Assembly: GCA_907165135.1 (NCBI GenBank)
Contig: OU015568.1
Location: 1,240,001-1,304,000 of the forward strand
Origin: Oikopleura dioica
Taxonomy: Eukaryota > Animalia > Chordata
DNA: 64,000 nt
Reading direction: 5' to 3'
The notes beneath the pieces were generated by a model. That model had not been told where the DNA came from, did not search any database, and saw only the letters and a list, made by a program, of their open reading frames with translations. Shown in pieces: positions 3,560-12,743 of this stretch. Position 1 is the first letter of the stretch. Every line of letters starts with the position of its first letter. A program made the translations under genes and the position numbers.

Positions 3560-5772
3560 TTATTCTTTGTGCTTGCTGATTCCTCCCTTATTGAAGTCGG
3601 CCATGAGGGCGCTTCGGTAAGCTTCGAGTCCACCTTCGATTCGTTTGACAGTGCCGTCCTGGCAGTTCCAGACTTCGTTACAGGCAACTACAACAAATGT
3701 TAAACAAGCAGGGTGCAAAAACAGACCTGATATGAGCCGCTCGTCGTGAGAAACCAAAATGACGCCTCCCTTAAATTGCTTGAGCGCTTCAGCCAAAGCA
3801 GCGACAGTTTCAACATCCAAGTGGTTTGTCGGTTCGTCAAGAACCAGCAAATGCGGCTGGGCGAATCCGAGCTTGGCAAAGGCAACTCGCGACTTCTGAC
3901 CTCCAGAAAGGACGTTCATTTTTCTCGTAGCCACATCTCCGGTGCATCCGAAACCGCCGAGAATTCTTCGGTATTCTTCAGCAGTCTTCCCAGGTTTGAA
4001 ATCACGAAGCGTCTCGATAGGGGTAAGCGAGAGGTCGAAGTCTTCAATGTGGTGCTGTGCGAAATAGGCGATTCGGCAGTTTCGGTTGTGCGTTACGTAG
4101 CCTTTCGTCGGCTCCAGCTTGCCAAGAAGCAGCTTCAATAGGGTCGATTTACCGGCTCCGTTCTCGCCGACAATGGCGATTCGGCTCTTGGAATCGCAGC
4201 TCAAGTCGATACCCTAAATTCATCATTTCAAAAAAAAATAAAATAAGCGCTATTACCTTGAAAATCTGACGAGAGCTGCTGTAAGCAAACTCGACATTGT
4301 CCATTTGAAGAAGAGTTCCATTGATTCTCTCTTCGGCCGGCGCGTTGAAGCCGAACTTGACGACCTCTGGTGGCTCTGGTGGGTAAAGGACAGGTAGTTT
4401 TTCCAAAATCTTGATCTTTGACTGGACTTGAGCGGCGCGATTGGCATTGTATCGGAATCGGTCAATGAAGACTTGGATGTGATCTCTTAAAATGAAAGTT
4501 TTACAATCTGAATCACTGTATTTGATAGTACCTGTAGCTCTTTTGAGCCTCGTAGTCTCTGAGTTGTTGCTTGTGTCTCTCTCCTCTCGTCTTCTCGAAG
4601 GTGTCATAGTCGCCTTTGTAGTAATACAGAGTCCTTGAGCTCAGATGAATGATGTCCGTGCAAACAGAGTTCAAATAACTCCTGTCGTGAGAAACCGTCA
4701 ACAAGGTATTCGGCCAGTTCTGAAGACGGCTTTCGAGCCACAAAACGGCTCGCATGTCCAACATGTTTGTCGGTTCGTCAAGCAACAACAGATCAGGCTC
4801 CATCAACAGCGCCTGCGCGAGAGCAAGTCGCATTCTCCAACCGCCAGAAAACTCCTTCGTCGTCATTTGCTGCATCTTCGTAGTGAAACCGAGACCGTTG
4901 AGAATTTCGGCAGCTTCGGACGGCTTTGAATCCGCGTCGATTTCCTCTAATCGCTCGTGGACGACTAACAATCTGTCATTATCCGCTCCCGATGCGCCAA
5001 GATCATCTGCTTCTTTGAGGAGATTGGTTCGCTCGGTCAGGACGCCAAGGACGGAGTCGAGGGCGGTCGTATCATCTCCAACGACTTCTTGTTCTACGTG
5101 GAGAACGGTGATATTGGACGGAAGCGACAGCCCCCGGGAATCGAGAGCTCGTAGAAGAGTAGATTTACCGGCACCGTTTCGGCCGACAAGCCCATATCTT
5201 TTTCCTTGGGCGAGATTGAGCTCCGCATTTTGGATCAACTGCTGGGCGCCGAAGGTCAAGTCGAAGTTTTCGATCAAAATATCGCCGGACATAGAAATTC
5301 CCGGCTTCGATTTGGCCTGGGAAGCGACGGCTTGTTCCTTGACCAGCGCTTCTTTTTCCTTGTTCTTTTCAGCTTCTTCCTCAGCTTGCCGTTTAGCAAG
5401 CTTCGCTCGGGCTTTCTTATCAGCTTTCGCGGATTCCTTGGCGTTGTAGTTTCCACGGAGCTCGATGTCGGTGACGAGGAGTGAGTCGAACTCAGATGTG
5501 TCGACTGCGCTGTCGCCGAAGACCACAGCATTGACGAGCTTGATCGGCTCGTCGCTCTTCTTGTCCATCAAGCCCCAGAGCTTCTCTGCGAGAGTATCGA
5601 CATCGTCTTGGATTGCTTGAGCGCAGTCGATCAGAAATGGTCCGATTCCATCAGCGACATCATCGGCCGAGTCAAAGCAGTCGACATCTTCGAGGACGCC
5701 GCCGAGGTAGTCCGCGATGTCATGGTCCAGTTTTGGGTAGAGCTCTAGAACGTGCTCTAGGAGGTTCGACAT
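3560..5772 (-). CDS. ABCF3: ATP-binding cassette sub-family F member 3 (GCN20-like)
   Basis: Two ABC domains (GRNGAGKST / FSGGWRMR / LLLLDEPTN; GENGAGKST / LSGGQKSR / LVLDEPTNHLD), no TM segments, and the N-terminal ...LDHDIADYLGGVLED extension typical of ABCF3. Confidence 0.92.
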
Positions 5773-7743: not shown

Positions 7744-10700
7744 ATGGTGCTGCTAATTTCTTTATTCATCGTTATTTCAATATGTAGTGGTTATTCAATT
7801 TCTTCAGCAAAGGTTAGTTCTCTTCGATTTTTTCTCCCTCCAAATTGCTCTTTAGACTTCAAACTTGACTTTCACTGCCCAGAAAAAGCTCCATTCATGC
7901 ACAAGCCTGACGCCAATCTCCATCTATTCCTGCTATTTATCCAAATTTCCCGAAGAGAACATCAACTACAGAACTAACGACGCGAAGCTCCAATGGATCG
8001 GAAATACAAGAGCAACTTATGAAGCAGAAATCGACGCTTCTTCGACCTCTAAATTTGCTTTTCTTGAGCTCAGAAGCATCGATACAGTCGGAGAAATCTT
8101 CTGGAACGGCGAGAAAATAGGACATGTCGCGAATTCTTTCAGAAGATATCTTCTCGACGTTTCTTCTCGAATCCTTCCAAAAAATCATTTGCAAATCGAC
8201 CTCTCTCCTCCAATTTCTTCAGCGAAAAAACTTGCCGAAAAGGATCAAATTCCCCAATTTCCCGAATGCCCCGTCCCGGCCCAAACGAACGGTCAATGTC
8301 ATATCAACATGCTTCGTAAAGCACAGTACTCATTTTCATGGGACTGGGGACCGTCTTTGCCCGATTCTGGCATTAACGAGGAGCCAAAGCTAATTTCTTT
8401 CGATTTCTCAATGATTTACGATGCTAAATTGAACCTGCTGACGAAATATTCCGATGTTCAGCAAACTGTTCAACTTCAACTGCTCATTCTCCATCCAAAC
8501 TCTAAAGAGGCGCCAAATGGAGAGATTCAAGTCAGTTTCGAGCCTTCTCTTCCTTTTGATTTAGGAGAAATTATCTACGAAAAATTCGAGGGTGATAAAA
8601 ACTTGTGGAAAGCAACGGCAGATCTGTCCATTTCAATCATGGACATTAACTGGTGGTGGCCACATGAGATGGGAAAACAAGACCTGTATTCTGTACAATT
8701 TTCCTGGATCCCTGAAAAAGGAGAAAAATCAACGATTGAGAAAGAATTCGGCTTCAGATCCGTCGAACTCGTTCAGGAACAACTTCCAGATGGCCGTTCT
8801 TTCTACTTCAAAATCAACGAAAAACCGATTTTTATGAGTGGCAGCAATTGGATTCCCAGCGCCTCTTCCATCGCCAGTTTCGACAACTTGTACGAAGACA
8901 ATCTTCAATCCGCCGTCGAAGCTGGAATCAAAATTCTACGCGTCTGGGGAGGTGGAATCTACGAGCAAGACGCTTTCTATTCATTGGCTAATCGTCTCGG
9001 GATCATGATTTGGCAAGATTTCATGTTCACTTGTTCGACGTACGAAAACGACTCCGAATTCTTGAATTCTGTCGAGAAAGAAGTTTCTGATCAGATTTGG
9101 CGATTGAGCTCGAATCCGTCTGTTATTGCCTGGGCTGGAAACAACGAAAACGAAGCTGCTTTGGCGACGAACTGGTGGAGTATCCCAGAAGAAAAGATGA
9201 ACCTCTATTTCGGGCAGTACCGAGATTTGTACACCAATACAATCCAGAACACTGTCATCAAAGAAGGTCTTTCATCTCCCTTTTTTCTTTCAAGCCCAAG
9301 CAATGGAAAGGAGTCGGAACTTTCGCCATTTGGAATCGCCAAGAATCCATACGACCCAAACTACGGCGACGTTCACTTCTACGATTACAAATCAGACTGT
9401 ACTGATTGGCGAAACTTCCCAAAGACTCGATTTGCCTCGGAATTCGGCTATCAGGACTAGGAGTGGCTCATGATTTTTATTTTTGACTTTTTAGCAAGTG
9501 ATAGTCGAGACAAACGAAAAAAATAATTGAATTTTAGAATGGACTTTTGGGATTGTACTGGAATTTTCTTGATTTTAAGCGGCTTCAAAATCTTATTGGC
9601 GCAGAAGTACGACCTGTATCATTCTACTGACTTTGATGTTCACAGAAACTGGCTGGCAATCACTCATTCGAAGCCGATCTCAGGAAGAGTTAATCACCTT
9701 CTGCTCAAAGAAGTGCATCTGAAAGCATGAAAAACTCTGAAAAGAATGGTATTTTGAAGCAACATCCGAGTGGACGCTTGACTACCCGCCGTTCTTTGCG
9801 TATTTTGAGAAGATTTTGTCGAAATATGCTGCGAAATTCGACCCACTTCTTGTGAAGATCCAAAAAGATCCCATTTCAACAGACTATGTTGTTCTTTTCC
9901 AGAAGATGTCAGTCGTTCTCACCGATGTTTTCGTCCTTTTTGGAGCCTATTTCTTTTGCAAGGTAATAACCGTCTTTCGAGCTTGACTCATTAAATTTTT
10001 AGAGCTTCAAATCCAGGAATAATAACTTGGAAGTGGCCTTTCTTATAATCTGCAATGCTGCTTTGTTCGTCATCGACCACATTCACTTTCAATACAACGG
10101 GATGATTATCGGACTGCTTCTTTGCTTCCTCGCAGCGTTTTTCGATGGCAAACTGAAGACTGCTGCGTTTCTTTTTTCATGTTTGCTTCACTTGAAGGTA
10201 AGATGAAGATTATTGAAGCGAGAGCTTATGAAGCTATTATTAACGAATTTTGCTCAAATATTTAGTTAGAAAATTCATGAAACCAAAATTTCAAAATATC
10301 AAATTTCTTTTATTGAAAATCGCATTTTAAATGCCATAAATTATGGCTCGTAAATCGTTTCCTAGCATCTGTTTCTCTACGTCGCTCCTTTCGTCGGAAT
10401 CGCATTTCTTCAGCAACTCAACTCTTCTCGATTACGAAGCGGTCCAAAAGCTGCTCTTAGCCAATTCATCTCGATTGCCCTCATCGTCATTTCCGTCTCA
10501 TCAGTTTCCCTCTTTCCATTTCTTTCACAACTGGACCAGCTTGTGTCTCGACTTTTTCCATTCAAACGCGGCCTGACACACTCCTACTGGGCAGGCAACT
10601 TCTGGGCCCTCTATAACTTCTTCGACCTCATCCTTGCGCGCTTTGGGGGTATGAAATCGGGCCTGACTTCTGGACTTGTCGGCGAATTTTCTCATCAAGT

Positions 10701-12743
10701 GCTGCCGAATGTTCCTCCTCTCGCTACTTTTATCCTGACTTTTGCTTCGATGATTCCTGCTCTTTTCAAGCTCTGGAATAAGCCAGAGAAGAAGACGTGG
10801 ATTCTATCCTTTTGCTCAATCGCTCTATCCAGGTTTGAAATCTCTACAAAGCTTCTTCTATTTTTCTTAGCTTTTTATTCGGCTGGCATGTGCACGAAAA
10901 GGCAATTCTTCTAGCGCTCGTGCCTGCAAGTGGGCTGATGCTTCTGGAGAAAAATCTCTTCAGAATTTTCGGGATATTGATGGTCGCTGGTGTTTCCGGT
11001 GTTTTGCCCTTGATTTACACTGAATTTGAACAGGTAGGGAAAGAAATTTGACAGCTCTAGAACTCTATTTAAGTCGATTGTGATCCCGATTTTCATCCTC
11101 TACTTGCTGACGACATTGTTGTTCTTTCAAGCTGACTATCAAAAGTAAGCTCAGAATGAGTTTTTCTTACTCAATTGTCTGATAAGGATGCATCTCCTGG
11201 AAAAGCTCTACATCATCAGTTCCGTCCCAACCGTCGCTTTCGTGCAAATCTGGTCCAAACTTCTGCTTCCTTCTCTGCCATTTCTCCCGCTTCTAATTCA
11301 ATCTCTTTACACCGCTCTTGGGGTTCACTACTCCTTCATTCTCATCAACCTAGAACTATTTTCTGTAGACGTCAAAAAGCTTCAATAGAACTCTTAAAAA
11401 ACTAAATCATGAGCCAACAATAAGAGCTGGGGATTAATTTCGTCGATTGAAAATGTCACGGCAAGTGGAGACAGGTTCTTTGGGTCGAATTGGGCCACAC
11501 AAAGAAATCATCATCAGGACGGAAACGAGCAGATTCTCGGCTTCATTACTGTAAGTTTCAAGTTGAAATAGAATGAATTGACGATTTTTTCTAGCAATTT
11601 TTCGGCGACCAACCTTGGATAAAAAATCAATCAGAAGATGCCTTCTGGAACTTTGTCTATCTATCACAAACTGTTCAAAGCATCTGTACATCGTCTCAGG
11701 CGAACTTCTACCGCTCCAGAGCTGGGCTAAAAGGAACCATGGGCGCGCTGTACTGGCAGCTAAATGATGTCTGGCCGACGGTTTCGTGGAGCTCCCTCGA
11801 TCATTCGAAAAACTGGAAGCCGCTGCATCACCAAATCAAGAAAAGTTTCAACTCTGATTTATCCCTTATCACAAACGTCAACGAAAACGATCAGCTGGAA
11901 ATCTATGCTGTTTCTGACAACGAGGCAAAGAGGGGAAGACTGAAAGTGCAGACGAGATCTTGGACGAGTTTCGAAGTTTCGGGCGAAGAAGATCTTGGCG
12001 AATTCGAACTGAAAATGCTCGAGAGTAATTTGCTGGTGACCAAGAATGTCGGCTATCTTTTGAATAAGATGAACTGCCCTTATGGAAAATGGAATGAGTG
12101 CTTCTACACCGTCACTTTTGTAAGTTGCCTTTTCAAAAAAATCATTAATGTTTCCCTATTCCAAGAAAACTGATGAAGACAAGCTATTTTCAACCTGGCA
12201 ATCCTCCGTCCCAATCCGCGAAATTCATACATTCAATCATCTGAATGCCAGCATTTCCATCTCCTCTTGCGAAGAAAAAATTGACAAGAGTCTTCAGCTG
12301 ACACTAGAATCTGCTTTGCCACAGCCTTTCGTCTGGCTTGAAACGAAATTTCGAGGAAAGTGGGATGAGAACTTTTTGCTGATCACCGAAAAACTGACAT
12401 CTGTGACTTTCAAGCCAGCCGGGGTGGAGTCCATTTCTTGTGACGATTTCCTCAAGAATACGAAGATTTTCTACCCATCAAAGGTAAACCTTGCCCTCTG
12501 GTAGAACATCTCCTGAATTCTCAATTTCAGGTTCTTGTCGAGCCACCAAAGCCGTCTGAAACAAATCGTGCAAAACTCATCTTCGTTATATTTTCCATTC
12601 TCATCGCTGTTAGTTGTATTGCCTGTTGTTTCGCCTGCATGTGTTCGGGAGCGGGGAAAGAAAAAATCGAGCAATCCCGAAATTTGAAATTTGGAAAACT
12701 GCCTCCAAGAGTCGCAAATAGAAGAAAATATCGTCAACTGTAA
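7744..12743 (+). CDS. MANBA: Beta-mannosidase (GH2) with signal peptide and C-terminal transmembrane anchor
   Basis: [44 protein letters not shown]|SW (joined across 9455-11424) and [12 protein letters not shown]. Last exon 12531-12743 encodes a TM segment and ends YRQL-TAA. Confidence 0.93.
9539..11388 (+). CDS. ALG8: Dolichyl-P-Glc:Glc1Man9GlcNAc2-PP-Dol alpha-1,3-glucosyltransferase, nested in a MANBA intron
   Basis: [50 protein letters not shown] and [22 protein letters not shown] are ALG8 hallmark motifs. ATG 9539 follows TTTTAG; stop TAG at 11386-11388. Confidence 0.92.

Follow-up and report, generated by a model that had tools for sequence, protein, structure and literature searches.

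In the cholinergic locus, VAChT lies within the first ChAT intron on the same strand (unc-17/cha-1 in C. elegans), an arrangement that is deeply conserved and for which alternative processing of a common transcript has been proposed. The two cholinergic genes share a 5′ exon through cis-splicing and serve one pathway. Another form of close packing is seen in the spliced-leader (SL) operons of O. dioica and C. elegans, where genes follow each other head-to-tail only tens of bases apart (PMC6389100; PMC11067885). Introns whose ends are tied together by base pairing are known as well, among them the nonconventional introns of euglenids and transposon-derived introns bearing terminal inverted repeats (TIRs) (PMC11282704; PMC3935182), and long-range pairing within introns has been described in Drosophila and human (PMC2724269; PMC8052449).

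We analysed a stretch of 64,000 nucleotides from Oikopleura dioica OKI2018_I69 (the window, to which all coordinates refer), in which an ALG8 gene (9539-11388) lies wholly within an intron (9455-11424) of the beta-mannosidase gene MANBA, both on the + strand. Like the cholinergic locus, this is a complete same-strand gene within a host intron. Unlike there, ALG8 lies amid the host coding sequence, shows no evident functional link to its host, and occupies a non-GT intron whose ends are tied by a helix; rather than sharing a 5′ exon, ALG8 would have a spliced leader added. With SL operons the locus has in common the head-to-tail spacing, an unpaired AG|A that immediately precedes the downstream ATG, and an A-rich hexamer just ahead of the next acceptor. 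However, the 'upstream gene' would here consist of MANBA exons 1 and 2, which have no 3′ end at this point: MANBA does not end before ALG8 begins but resumes past it in exon 3. Moreover, making ALG8 would destroy the MANBA message and vice versa, so the outputs would be alternatives rather than co-products. As in euglenid introns (helix +4..+6 with -8..-6), we found a non-GT border, a short helix that begins only bases past the 5′ junction and stops ~7 bases ahead of the 3′ junction, and a widely variable intron length; in contrast to euglenid and TIR introns, the MANBA intron has a normal AG at its 3′ border, G as its 5′ base and a whole expressed gene inside, and unlike TIR introns it shows no detectable transposon family or target-site duplication. 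The features of the locus are as follows (L numbers are our handles for sequences from other lineages).

7744..7812, + strand: MANBA exon 1, 23 codons, begins with ATG, signal-peptide-like
7856..9454, + strand: MANBA exon 2, 533 codons, GH2 N-terminal domains, NE and SEFGYQ catalytic motifs
9455..11424, + strand: host intron of MANBA, GA...AG, 1970 nt, larvacean-specific position
9464..9476, + strand: 5′ arm of the helix, TGGCTCATGATTT, intron +10..+22 (inverted-repeat search, covariation, MFE)
9532..9538, + strand: TTTTAG then A, an unpaired acceptor resembling a trans-splice site, separated by one base from the ALG8 ATG at 9539
9539-9683, 9745-9962, 10003-10197, 10366-10832, 10871-11033, 11074-11144, 11187-11388, + strand: the 7 exons of ALG8 (PF03155)
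9684..9744, + strand: ALG8 intron 1, 61 nt, the second GA-AG intron of the locus, with a 6-bp terminal stem (AGAGTT/AACTCT)
11404..11416, + strand: 3′ arm of the helix, AAATCATGAGCCA, intron -21..-9, inside the 36 nt between ALG8 stop and host acceptor
11419..11424, + strand: host 3′ splice site AATAAG, also a poly(A)-signal-like hexamer 3′ of ALG8
11425..11550, + strand: MANBA exon 3, 42 codons, SWGLISS..., opens with AGC TGG
11595..12119, + strand: MANBA exon 4, weak PF17786 match, kept in L012-L016, L019 and L020, present in RNA of a related lineage
12166..12483, + strand: MANBA exon 5, PF17753
12531..12743, + strand: MANBA exon 6, hydrophobic stretch, basic tail and stop, 54% identity in L019

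For both spliced models, database searches were run exon by exon, while the joined coding sequences were checked for length and stops only. The MANBA model comprises 6 exons and 949 codons with a single terminal stop on the + strand of the window. Exon 2 matched PF22666 (9e-32) and PF00703 in Pfam, and with PF17786 (weak) and PF17753 downstream, GH2 beta-mannosidase domains flank the host intron on both sides. The GH2 signature is present, comprising the N-terminal, sandwich and mannosidase Ig domains together with NE as acid/base and the E within SEFGYQ as nucleophile. Identity of exon 2 to named vertebrate beta-mannosidases is 40-44%. No spliced larvacean MANBA product was found: exon 2 had no match above 40% identity in a representative search, and a word search with the same exon was blind to proteins longer than 932 aa. 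MANBA is a single-copy gene in this genome. The joined ALG8 model has 486 codons and again a single terminal stop. Six of its seven exons (all except the 23-codon exon 6, which was left out) matched Alg6_Alg8 (PF03155) in profile order, and the named match is a Glc1Man9GlcNAc2 alpha-1,3-glucosyltransferase with 46% identity. Two genes of this family are encoded in the genome, and the other one is ALG6-like, matching yeast ALG6 (6SNH) at 4.6e-23 versus 0.14 for the nested gene. By elimination, this assigns the nested gene as the putative orthologue of ALG8 rather than ALG6; an ESM Atlas search did not separate the two, and a PDB search with ALG8 exon 4 gave no match. The original prediction of a multi-exon, same-strand ALG8 in a GA-AG intron holds in all its coordinates, and Pfam agrees with it.

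MANBA exon 2 ends with ...SEFGYQ (GGC TAT CAG) at 9454, directly followed by the GA donor, and CAG|GA is found in 5/5 lineages. There is no usable GT donor, the sole nearby GT (9463-64) falling beyond an in-frame TAG. That the MANBA frame resumes at 11425, as had been proposed, is supported by the junction peptide ...|SWGLISS, which is kept in four lineages, and by amphioxus, where the counterparts of exons 2 and 3 are contiguous (the exon 2 part ends at L017:3777 and the exon 3 part starts at 3778). An intron at this position is absent from amphioxus and stickleback. Exon 3 is 66-79% identical in three other lineages, which exceeds the mean of the gene, and its first 21 codons rank among the best conserved although they lie 5′ of any in-frame ATG (the first on this side is at 11739 in the window). 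In L015, an in-frame stop immediately precedes exon 3. Closely preceded by a stop and lacking an early ATG, exon 3 can be translated only when joined to exon 2. These sequence comparisons support MANBA as one gene spanning the intron.

ALG8 fits tightly into this intron, as originally described. Its ATG lies 84 nt from the host donor (68-144 nt across lineages), TTTTAG (9532-9537) and a single A directly precede the ATG, and the TAG stop (11386-88) lies 36 nt 5′ of the host acceptor. The same acceptor form, TTYAG followed by AATG, occurs in 5/5 lineages. Trans-splice sites of O. dioica are unpaired AGs, usually with A next (PMC6389100). Judged from its sequence context, AATAAG may in addition act as the poly(A) signal of ALG8.

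A comparison of synteny showed that the nest is not confined to the window. It recurs completely in three more larvacean lineages (L019, L002+L015 and L020) and with its 5′ side in another (L003), although MANBA exon 2 of nest-bearing lineages shares only 45-67% identity with the window (three lineages). L016 was omitted because it gave little information: 5′ of exon 4 it has only a SWGL-like trace, and neither exon 3 nor an ALG8 end is clearly recognisable. An assembly chimera was ruled out, as the layout is repeated in metagenome and Logan contigs that represent three or four other lineages independently. While operons are not retained from one O. dioica lineage to the next (PMC11067885), the MANBA/ALG8 layout is kept far deeper, in the animal genome known to lose gene order fastest. 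Nesting can thus freeze a gene neighbourhood. The earlier idea that the nest couples N-glycan synthesis and breakdown is unsupported; any break-up of the nest would destroy the host, and this is enough to explain its retention. Our literature search, which was not exhaustive, found no description of an ALG8/MANBA nest or of stem-closed GA-AG introns in Oikopleura.

The two ends of the host intron are complementary to each other, an element of the locus that is new and was overlooked in the original prediction. The arms form a perfect helix of 13, 12, 10 and 11 bp in four lineages, a length reached by 4, 5, 37 and 68 of 5000 shuffles, respectively; support for the two shorter stems (37 and 68 of 5000) is only moderate because of A/T-rich flanks. 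In relatives, the arms start at +2..+7 and end at -7..-8. The core TGGCT/AGCCA is invariant across lineages, and a scripted count of pairs revealed both-sided changes that preserve pairing at offsets -2, -1, 5, 6 and 8. When the whole 2-kb intron was folded, the MFE structure contained the helix in the window, L019 and L020, with pair probabilities of 0.74-1.0 (10/13 at 1.0), ~1.0 and ~0.8, respectively. RNAduplex energies on 60-nt flanks are inflated by A/T runs, and we judged the helix by run length, position, covariation and whole-intron folds instead. Terminal stems of 13 and 6 bp are present in the two GA-AG introns of the locus versus 3-5 bp in its nine GT-AG introns. That is, the host intron shows what is typical of stem-closed non-GT introns: a GA border, complementary arms near both junctions and compensatory change. 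We consider it likely that the helix aids splicing of the host intron. But as only 7-9 nt separate the 3′ arm from the AG, there is no obvious room outside the helix for a branch point and a pyrimidine tract, and the helix could also hinder a standard spliceosome.

These findings suggest the following scenario, which we somewhat favour as a whole, including the splicing route, as the best explanation of an old and real same-strand nest. In a larvacean ancestor, the single-copy beta-mannosidase gene would have gained an intron just past SEFGYQ that came to house the entire ALG8. In O. dioica, introns of the GA/AG type make up ~12% and are enriched among new introns, while only 2.4% of introns exceed 1 kb (PMC4122922). 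For MANBA mRNA, the 2-kb GA-AG intron would be removed, with the 10-13 bp helix looping out ALG8 and placing the weak GA donor beside its own AG and not beside the seven acceptors of ALG8. For ALG8 mRNA, the 5′ end would most likely arise by SL trans-splicing at the conserved AG|A before the ATG, and the 3′ end would form within, or just beyond, the 36 nt preceding the host acceptor. As the 5′ arm lies upstream of the ALG8 acceptor and the 3′ arm in or after the ALG8 3′ UTR, the MANBA and ALG8 outcomes would be mutually exclusive for each pre-mRNA. Going by the form of its acceptor, ALG8 is probably SL trans-spliced, while chances are about even that its pre-mRNA starts, at least partly, at the MANBA promoter.

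RNA data were available from three oligo-dT runs and one single-cell run that are labelled as the same species but stem from a lineage near L001/L019. At this divergence (<90-95% match) and <1x cover, they contained no reads across the 9454|11425 junction and no SL-ALG8 reads. Indirect traces, namely the MANBA exon 1-2 junction, MANBA exon 4 and the ALG8 exon 3-4 junction, were detected in the RNA of this related lineage, and none of the Logan RNA contigs contained the stretch.

The arrangement might also be read in other ways. Nest and helix could be real with ALG8 nevertheless independent, driven by a compact promoter of its own in the 84-nt spacer or at the end of MANBA exon 2, and simply discarded with the intron from host transcripts, with no operon-like sharing. 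We regard this as a real possibility, if below even chances. In O. dioica, 693 internal promoters are documented inside operons, and monocistronic genes are trans-spliced too, so that the AG|A acceptor is no proof of a polycistron (PMC6389100); furthermore, directly 3′ of the 5′ arm the window and L019 share a conserved block, which could be a promoter element. However, the spacer is merely 68-144 nt long and partly occupied by helix arm and acceptor, beyond which it shows no conservation across distant lineages, and we found no TATA-like or TCTAGA element in the spacer of the window. An own CAGE start is also uncommon for downstream genes at such distances, being found for 19% of downstream operon genes in O. 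dioica (PMC6389100). The complementary intron ends, in turn, could be a mere relic of the TIRs of a transposon from which the intron arose, with no current role in splicing. Transposon-derived introns with TIRs are reported in Fritillaria and other organisms (PMC11282704), and the MANBA intron lies at a new position. Yet decay would be expected at such divergences, whereas both-sided changes keep five pairs between lineages with spacers too diverged to align, which makes a mere relic improbable. Origin from a MITE family was rejected, as no other copy was found: the 5′ 84 nt of the intron are unique in the genome, and a motif search remained at control level. No target-site duplication is visible at the intron borders.

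Finally, MANBA could truly be split, with a three-gene operon of a truncated, 557-aa MANBA-N, ALG8 and a MANBA-C that is separate or in decay, and an intron that is never spliced. The public annotation of the gene (g8736) ends at the TAG at 9458-60, the junction reads are missing from the <1x RNA of the divergent lineage, and the exon 3 acceptor, AG|A after AATAAG, resembles an intercistronic region. But at least four lineages conserve exons 3-6 with open frames, and the well-conserved start of exon 3 precedes any in-frame ATG and follows a stop. The read-through tail past GYQ is not conserved, its length before a stop being a single codon in the window and 39 codons in L001. Given that MANBA is single-copy and that the helix covaries, we consider a split gene highly improbable.

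Returning to the scenario of a looped-out ALG8, the helix might do more than aid splicing. Tentatively, and as something less likely than not, it could be a structural gate that allows a whole gene to lie on the host coding strand, with one promoter and two exclusive mRNAs. Before transcription reaches the 3′ arm, the GA donor would escape ordinary 5′ splice-site recognition. With the donor hidden, the ALG8 acceptor would stay unpaired and take the spliced leader, and the ALG8 introns would splice normally. Only transcripts that escape the SL route would fold the helix and yield MANBA, the ratio being set by kinetics and RNA structure. If true, such a gate would represent a larvacean mode of gene packing, with gene order frozen in an otherwise scrambled genome, and would provide a handle on the recognition of non-GT introns.

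Of the introns of Oikopleura, ~12% are non-GT, and in the present one a GA donor must reach its own AG over 2 kb and past seven competing acceptors; the covarying helix offers a concrete and mutable explanation of how this may be achieved. If the spliced leader cuts ALG8 from MANBA pre-mRNA, one transcript would give rise to two exclusive protein outputs.

Our analysis also corrects the public gene model. An exact-protein look-up of g8736 returned no record. The annotated protein g8736 terminates at the TAG at 9458-60, right behind the GA donor, even though the AUGUSTUS gene prediction behind the public annotation permitted GA-AG sites with hints (PMC11067885), a point that speaks against a spliced MANBA; in our reading, the sole beta-mannosidase gene of this animal has been annotated as a 557-aa stump.

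The beta-mannosidase gene (MANBA) and the ALG8 gene within it lie on the same strand. Their models were built by sequence reading and a scripted frame check, with exons joined solely to count codons and stops.

Gene models of the MANBA/ALG8 nest (all on the same strand)
7744-7812, 7856-9454, 11425-11550, 11595-12119, 12166-12483, 12531-12743: MANBA, six exons, 949 codons, single terminal stop
9455-11424: GA-AG host intron of MANBA, 1970 nt
9539-9683, 9745-9962, 10003-10197, 10366-10832, 10871-11033, 11074-11144, 11187-11388: ALG8, seven exons, 486 codons

Throughout, single exons served as queries for database searches. Exon-by-exon Pfam analysis placed GH2 beta-mannosidase domains both upstream (PF22666 and PF00703) and downstream (PF17786 and PF17753) of the large intron. 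Matches to the Alg6_Alg8 domain (PF03155) strictly followed the order of the profile (4-33, 35-107, 117-177, 178-335, 338-389 and 426-481) in six of the seven ALG8 exons, the scan covering all but the 23-codon exon 6. Sequence and frame check bore out the host splice sites of the original prediction (donor CAG|GA at 9454/9455, acceptor AAG|AGC at 11424/11425); no usable GT donor could replace the GA, the closest GT being located beyond an in-frame TAG. The short region predicted upstream of ALG8 was confirmed as an 84-nt spacer ahead of the ATG, with TTTTAG at 9532-9537 followed by A and the ATG, as was the distance of 36 nt from the ALG8 stop to the host acceptor. The genome contains one MANBA locus and two Alg6_Alg8 genes. 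The second, on C1 near 10.155 Mb and with a YGDYEAQRHWMELT motif, matched yeast ALG6 (PDB 6SNH) at 4.6e-23, versus only 0.14 for the nested gene, whose best named relative is a 'Glc1Man9GlcNAc2 alpha-1,3-glucosyltransferase', i.e. ALG8. Because the paralogue matches ALG6 and the nested gene is closest to an ALG8-type enzyme, similarity identifies the nested gene, by elimination, as ALG8.

Exon-wise searches and contig look-ups recovered the whole nest in three further lineages and its 5' side in another (contig L003, 42% identical to the window in MANBA exon 2). One lineage is represented by L001, L014 and L019 (99% alike, 67% identity in exon 2), with the whole nest on 5.5 kb of L019. L002 and L015, which are 99% alike across 1357 nt (48% identity), come from a single species and yield the whole nest when combined, and the Tara Oceans contigs L020 and L021 (46%) contain it as well. 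In every lineage, exon 2 ends in CAG, the intron begins with GA and ALG8 starts 68-144 nt past the donor behind TTYAG|A-ATG; wherever the 3' side was seen, the ALG8 stop lies 36-59 nt ahead of AG|AG(C/T)TGGGG. In amphioxus and stickleback, the MANBA locus is uninterrupted at this site and does not contain ALG8; judged from these loci, the host intron is therefore a larvacean novelty. A larvacean-specific GA-AG intron fits the figures for O. dioica, where 76% of introns occupy new positions, about 12% are GA/AG, enriched among the new introns, and only 2.4% exceed 1 kb (PMC4122922). The deep conservation of the nest contrasts with the reported loss of operons and gene order between O. dioica lineages (PMC11067885); any break in the nest would destroy the host gene. 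In a further contig, L016, only a AGCTGGGGGTTA (SWGL) trace was visible in positions 1-360 upstream of exon 4 (49% identical), and the region after it contained no recognisable rest of exon 3 and no ALG8 end. Exon 3 may be split there by a further intron, or the layout may differ.

Comparison across lineages also provides strong, albeit indirect, support for MANBA as a single gene across the intron. The junction peptide ...|SWGLISS is near-invariant in four lineages, its counterpart in amphioxus and stickleback being the uninterrupted SEYGFQSWPSF, and in amphioxus the matches to exons 2 and 3 adjoin exactly (L017:3777 / 3778). Among lineages, exon 3 is 66-79% identical, with exon 2 identity of only 45-67%, and exons 3-6 are open in all of them, while the sequence read past GYQ into the intron is unconserved. 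Exon 3 starts directly after a stop in L015 and runs for 22-90 codons without an in-frame ATG; therefore, it is translatable only when joined to exon 2. In the public gene set, the genome's only MANBA gene is truncated or split: the protein Oidioi.mRNA.OKI2018_I69.PAR.g8736 (100% match, 557 aa) comprises MANBA exons 1-2 plus one codon, up to the TAG at 9458-60. Since the comparison supports a single gene across the intron, this ending is most likely wrong. No 9454|11425 joints were found in RNA runs of another lineage of the species complex (match <90-95%, depth <1x). Loose ends of these reads matched L001, L014 and L019 best, and the lineage expresses MANBA without intron 1, MANBA exon 4, and ALG8 without intron 3.

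The ends of the host intron are complementary. Spacer alignment revealed a 12-mer directly 3' of the donor that is common to the window and L001, and a repeat search detected complementary arms at 9464-9484 and 11396-11416. Within these, TGGCTCATGATTT and AAATCATGAGCCA form 13 perfect bp (intron positions +10..+22 and -21..-9). Three other lineages showed perfect runs of 12, 10 and 11 bp at corresponding places (5' arm from +7, +2 and +4; 3' arm up to -8, -7 and -7). When the 3' flank was shuffled, runs as long as the observed 13, 12, 10 and 11 bp arose in 4, 5, 37 and 68 of 5000 cases, respectively, a null that is inflated by A/T runs and blind to position. Around the invariant core TGGCT/AGCCA, changes on both sides keep the pairing at five offsets (-2, C-G or A-T; -1, A-T or T-A; 5, C-G or T-A; 6, A-T or T-A; 8, G-C or T-A). 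When whole introns were folded with 20-nt exon flanks, the minimum-energy structure held every helix pair; pair probabilities were close to 1.0 for the window and for L019, and about 0.8 for L020. ALG8 intron 1 (9684-9744, 61 nt) is a second GA-AG intron with a 6-bp terminal stem (AGAGTT/AACTCT, +3..+8 / -12..-7), whereas the nine GT-AG introns of both genes show end complementarity of 3-5 bp only, in a small sample of 2 versus 9. At the site of ALG8 intron 1, L019 retains a GA-AG intron and L002 has none.

Helices joining intron ends are also known from transposon-derived introns. Here, a recent transposon relic is unlikely, because the first 84 nt of the host intron occur nowhere else in the genome and the intron borders show no target-site duplication. 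Directly 3' of the 5' arm, a TTTTATTYTTTGACKTTTTA-form block is shared by the window (9477-9497) and the 67%-identity lineage (L019 1448-1470), the rest of the spacer having diverged; this block may serve the ALG8 acceptor as a branch site, act as a promoter element or, in the window only, extend the helix. The longest inverted repeat of the region (31 nt, 77% complementary) pairs 9878-9908 in ALG8 exon 2 with 11191-11221 in exon 7, within coding sequence.

A GT donor ahead of a same-strand gene would pair with the first acceptor to appear, here that of ALG8. The GA donor, without further match to the 5' splice-site consensus, would leave this acceptor 'unpaired', which is the stated condition for spliced leader (SL) addition in O. 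dioica, the usual site being an AG with A as the next base (PMC6389100). Once the polymerase had reached the intron end, the 3' arm could pair with the 5' arm, looping out ALG8 and placing GA beside the correct AG. The 5' arm would sit in the discarded outron of ALG8, and the 3' arm within the 36 nt that must also contain the ALG8 message end, AATAAG overlapping the host acceptor; each pre-mRNA would therefore yield MANBA mRNA or ALG8 mRNA, never both. The aid of the helix to splicing, SL use at ALG8 and the ALG8 poly(A) site are putative roles. A difficulty for the helix model remains: the helix ends just 7-9 nt ahead of the host AG, which leaves only the 3' arm or the sequence upstream of it for the branch point. 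In the window, AATAAG (11419-11424) terminates in the host 3' splice site; in L015 and L020, TATAAA or ATAAAA precedes the acceptor by a few bases, and L019 has no such hexamer. ALG8 3'-end signals and host acceptor seem to occupy the same 20-30 nt.

ALG8 may be transcribed from the MANBA promoter or from an internal promoter. The short, unconserved spacer ahead of ALG8 favours sharing, as does the low reported share of downstream operon genes with a separate CAGE start (only 19%), and the 693 internal promoters documented in the same study call for caution (PMC6389100). The male-specific core promoter motif TCTAGA (PMC6389100) occurs at 11056-11061, within ALG8 intron 5, probably by chance.

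There are precedents for same-strand nests that share transcripts, such as the cholinergic locus. ALG8 acts in N-glycan precursor synthesis in the ER, and MANBA in lysosomal removal of the core mannose; for the originally predicted coupling of glycan synthesis and breakdown, we found no evidence. Oikopleura SL operons are well known, and long-range intron pairings occur in flies and humans (PMC2724269, PMC8052449). Euglenid nonconventional introns, with a helix joining the intron ends, have a geometry very similar to that of the MANBA host intron (PMC11282704; PMC3935182). The CORAL preprint briefly notes that 'intron-nested genes' of O. dioica pose a problem for annotation, and our literature search found no description of the MANBA/ALG8 nest or of stem-closed GA-AG introns in Oikopleura. 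MANBA/ALG8 is a well-documented nest and a clear helix case, traced in four lineages, with five pairs that covary and a 2-kb span that includes seven competing acceptors.

The last MANBA exon (12531-12743) codes for a hydrophobic, Cys-rich segment and then a basic tail, resembling a membrane anchor at the C-terminus. Nothing in the amphioxus or stickleback loci matches this exon; in L019, it is 54% conserved. The beta-mannosidase of the window may be membrane-tethered.
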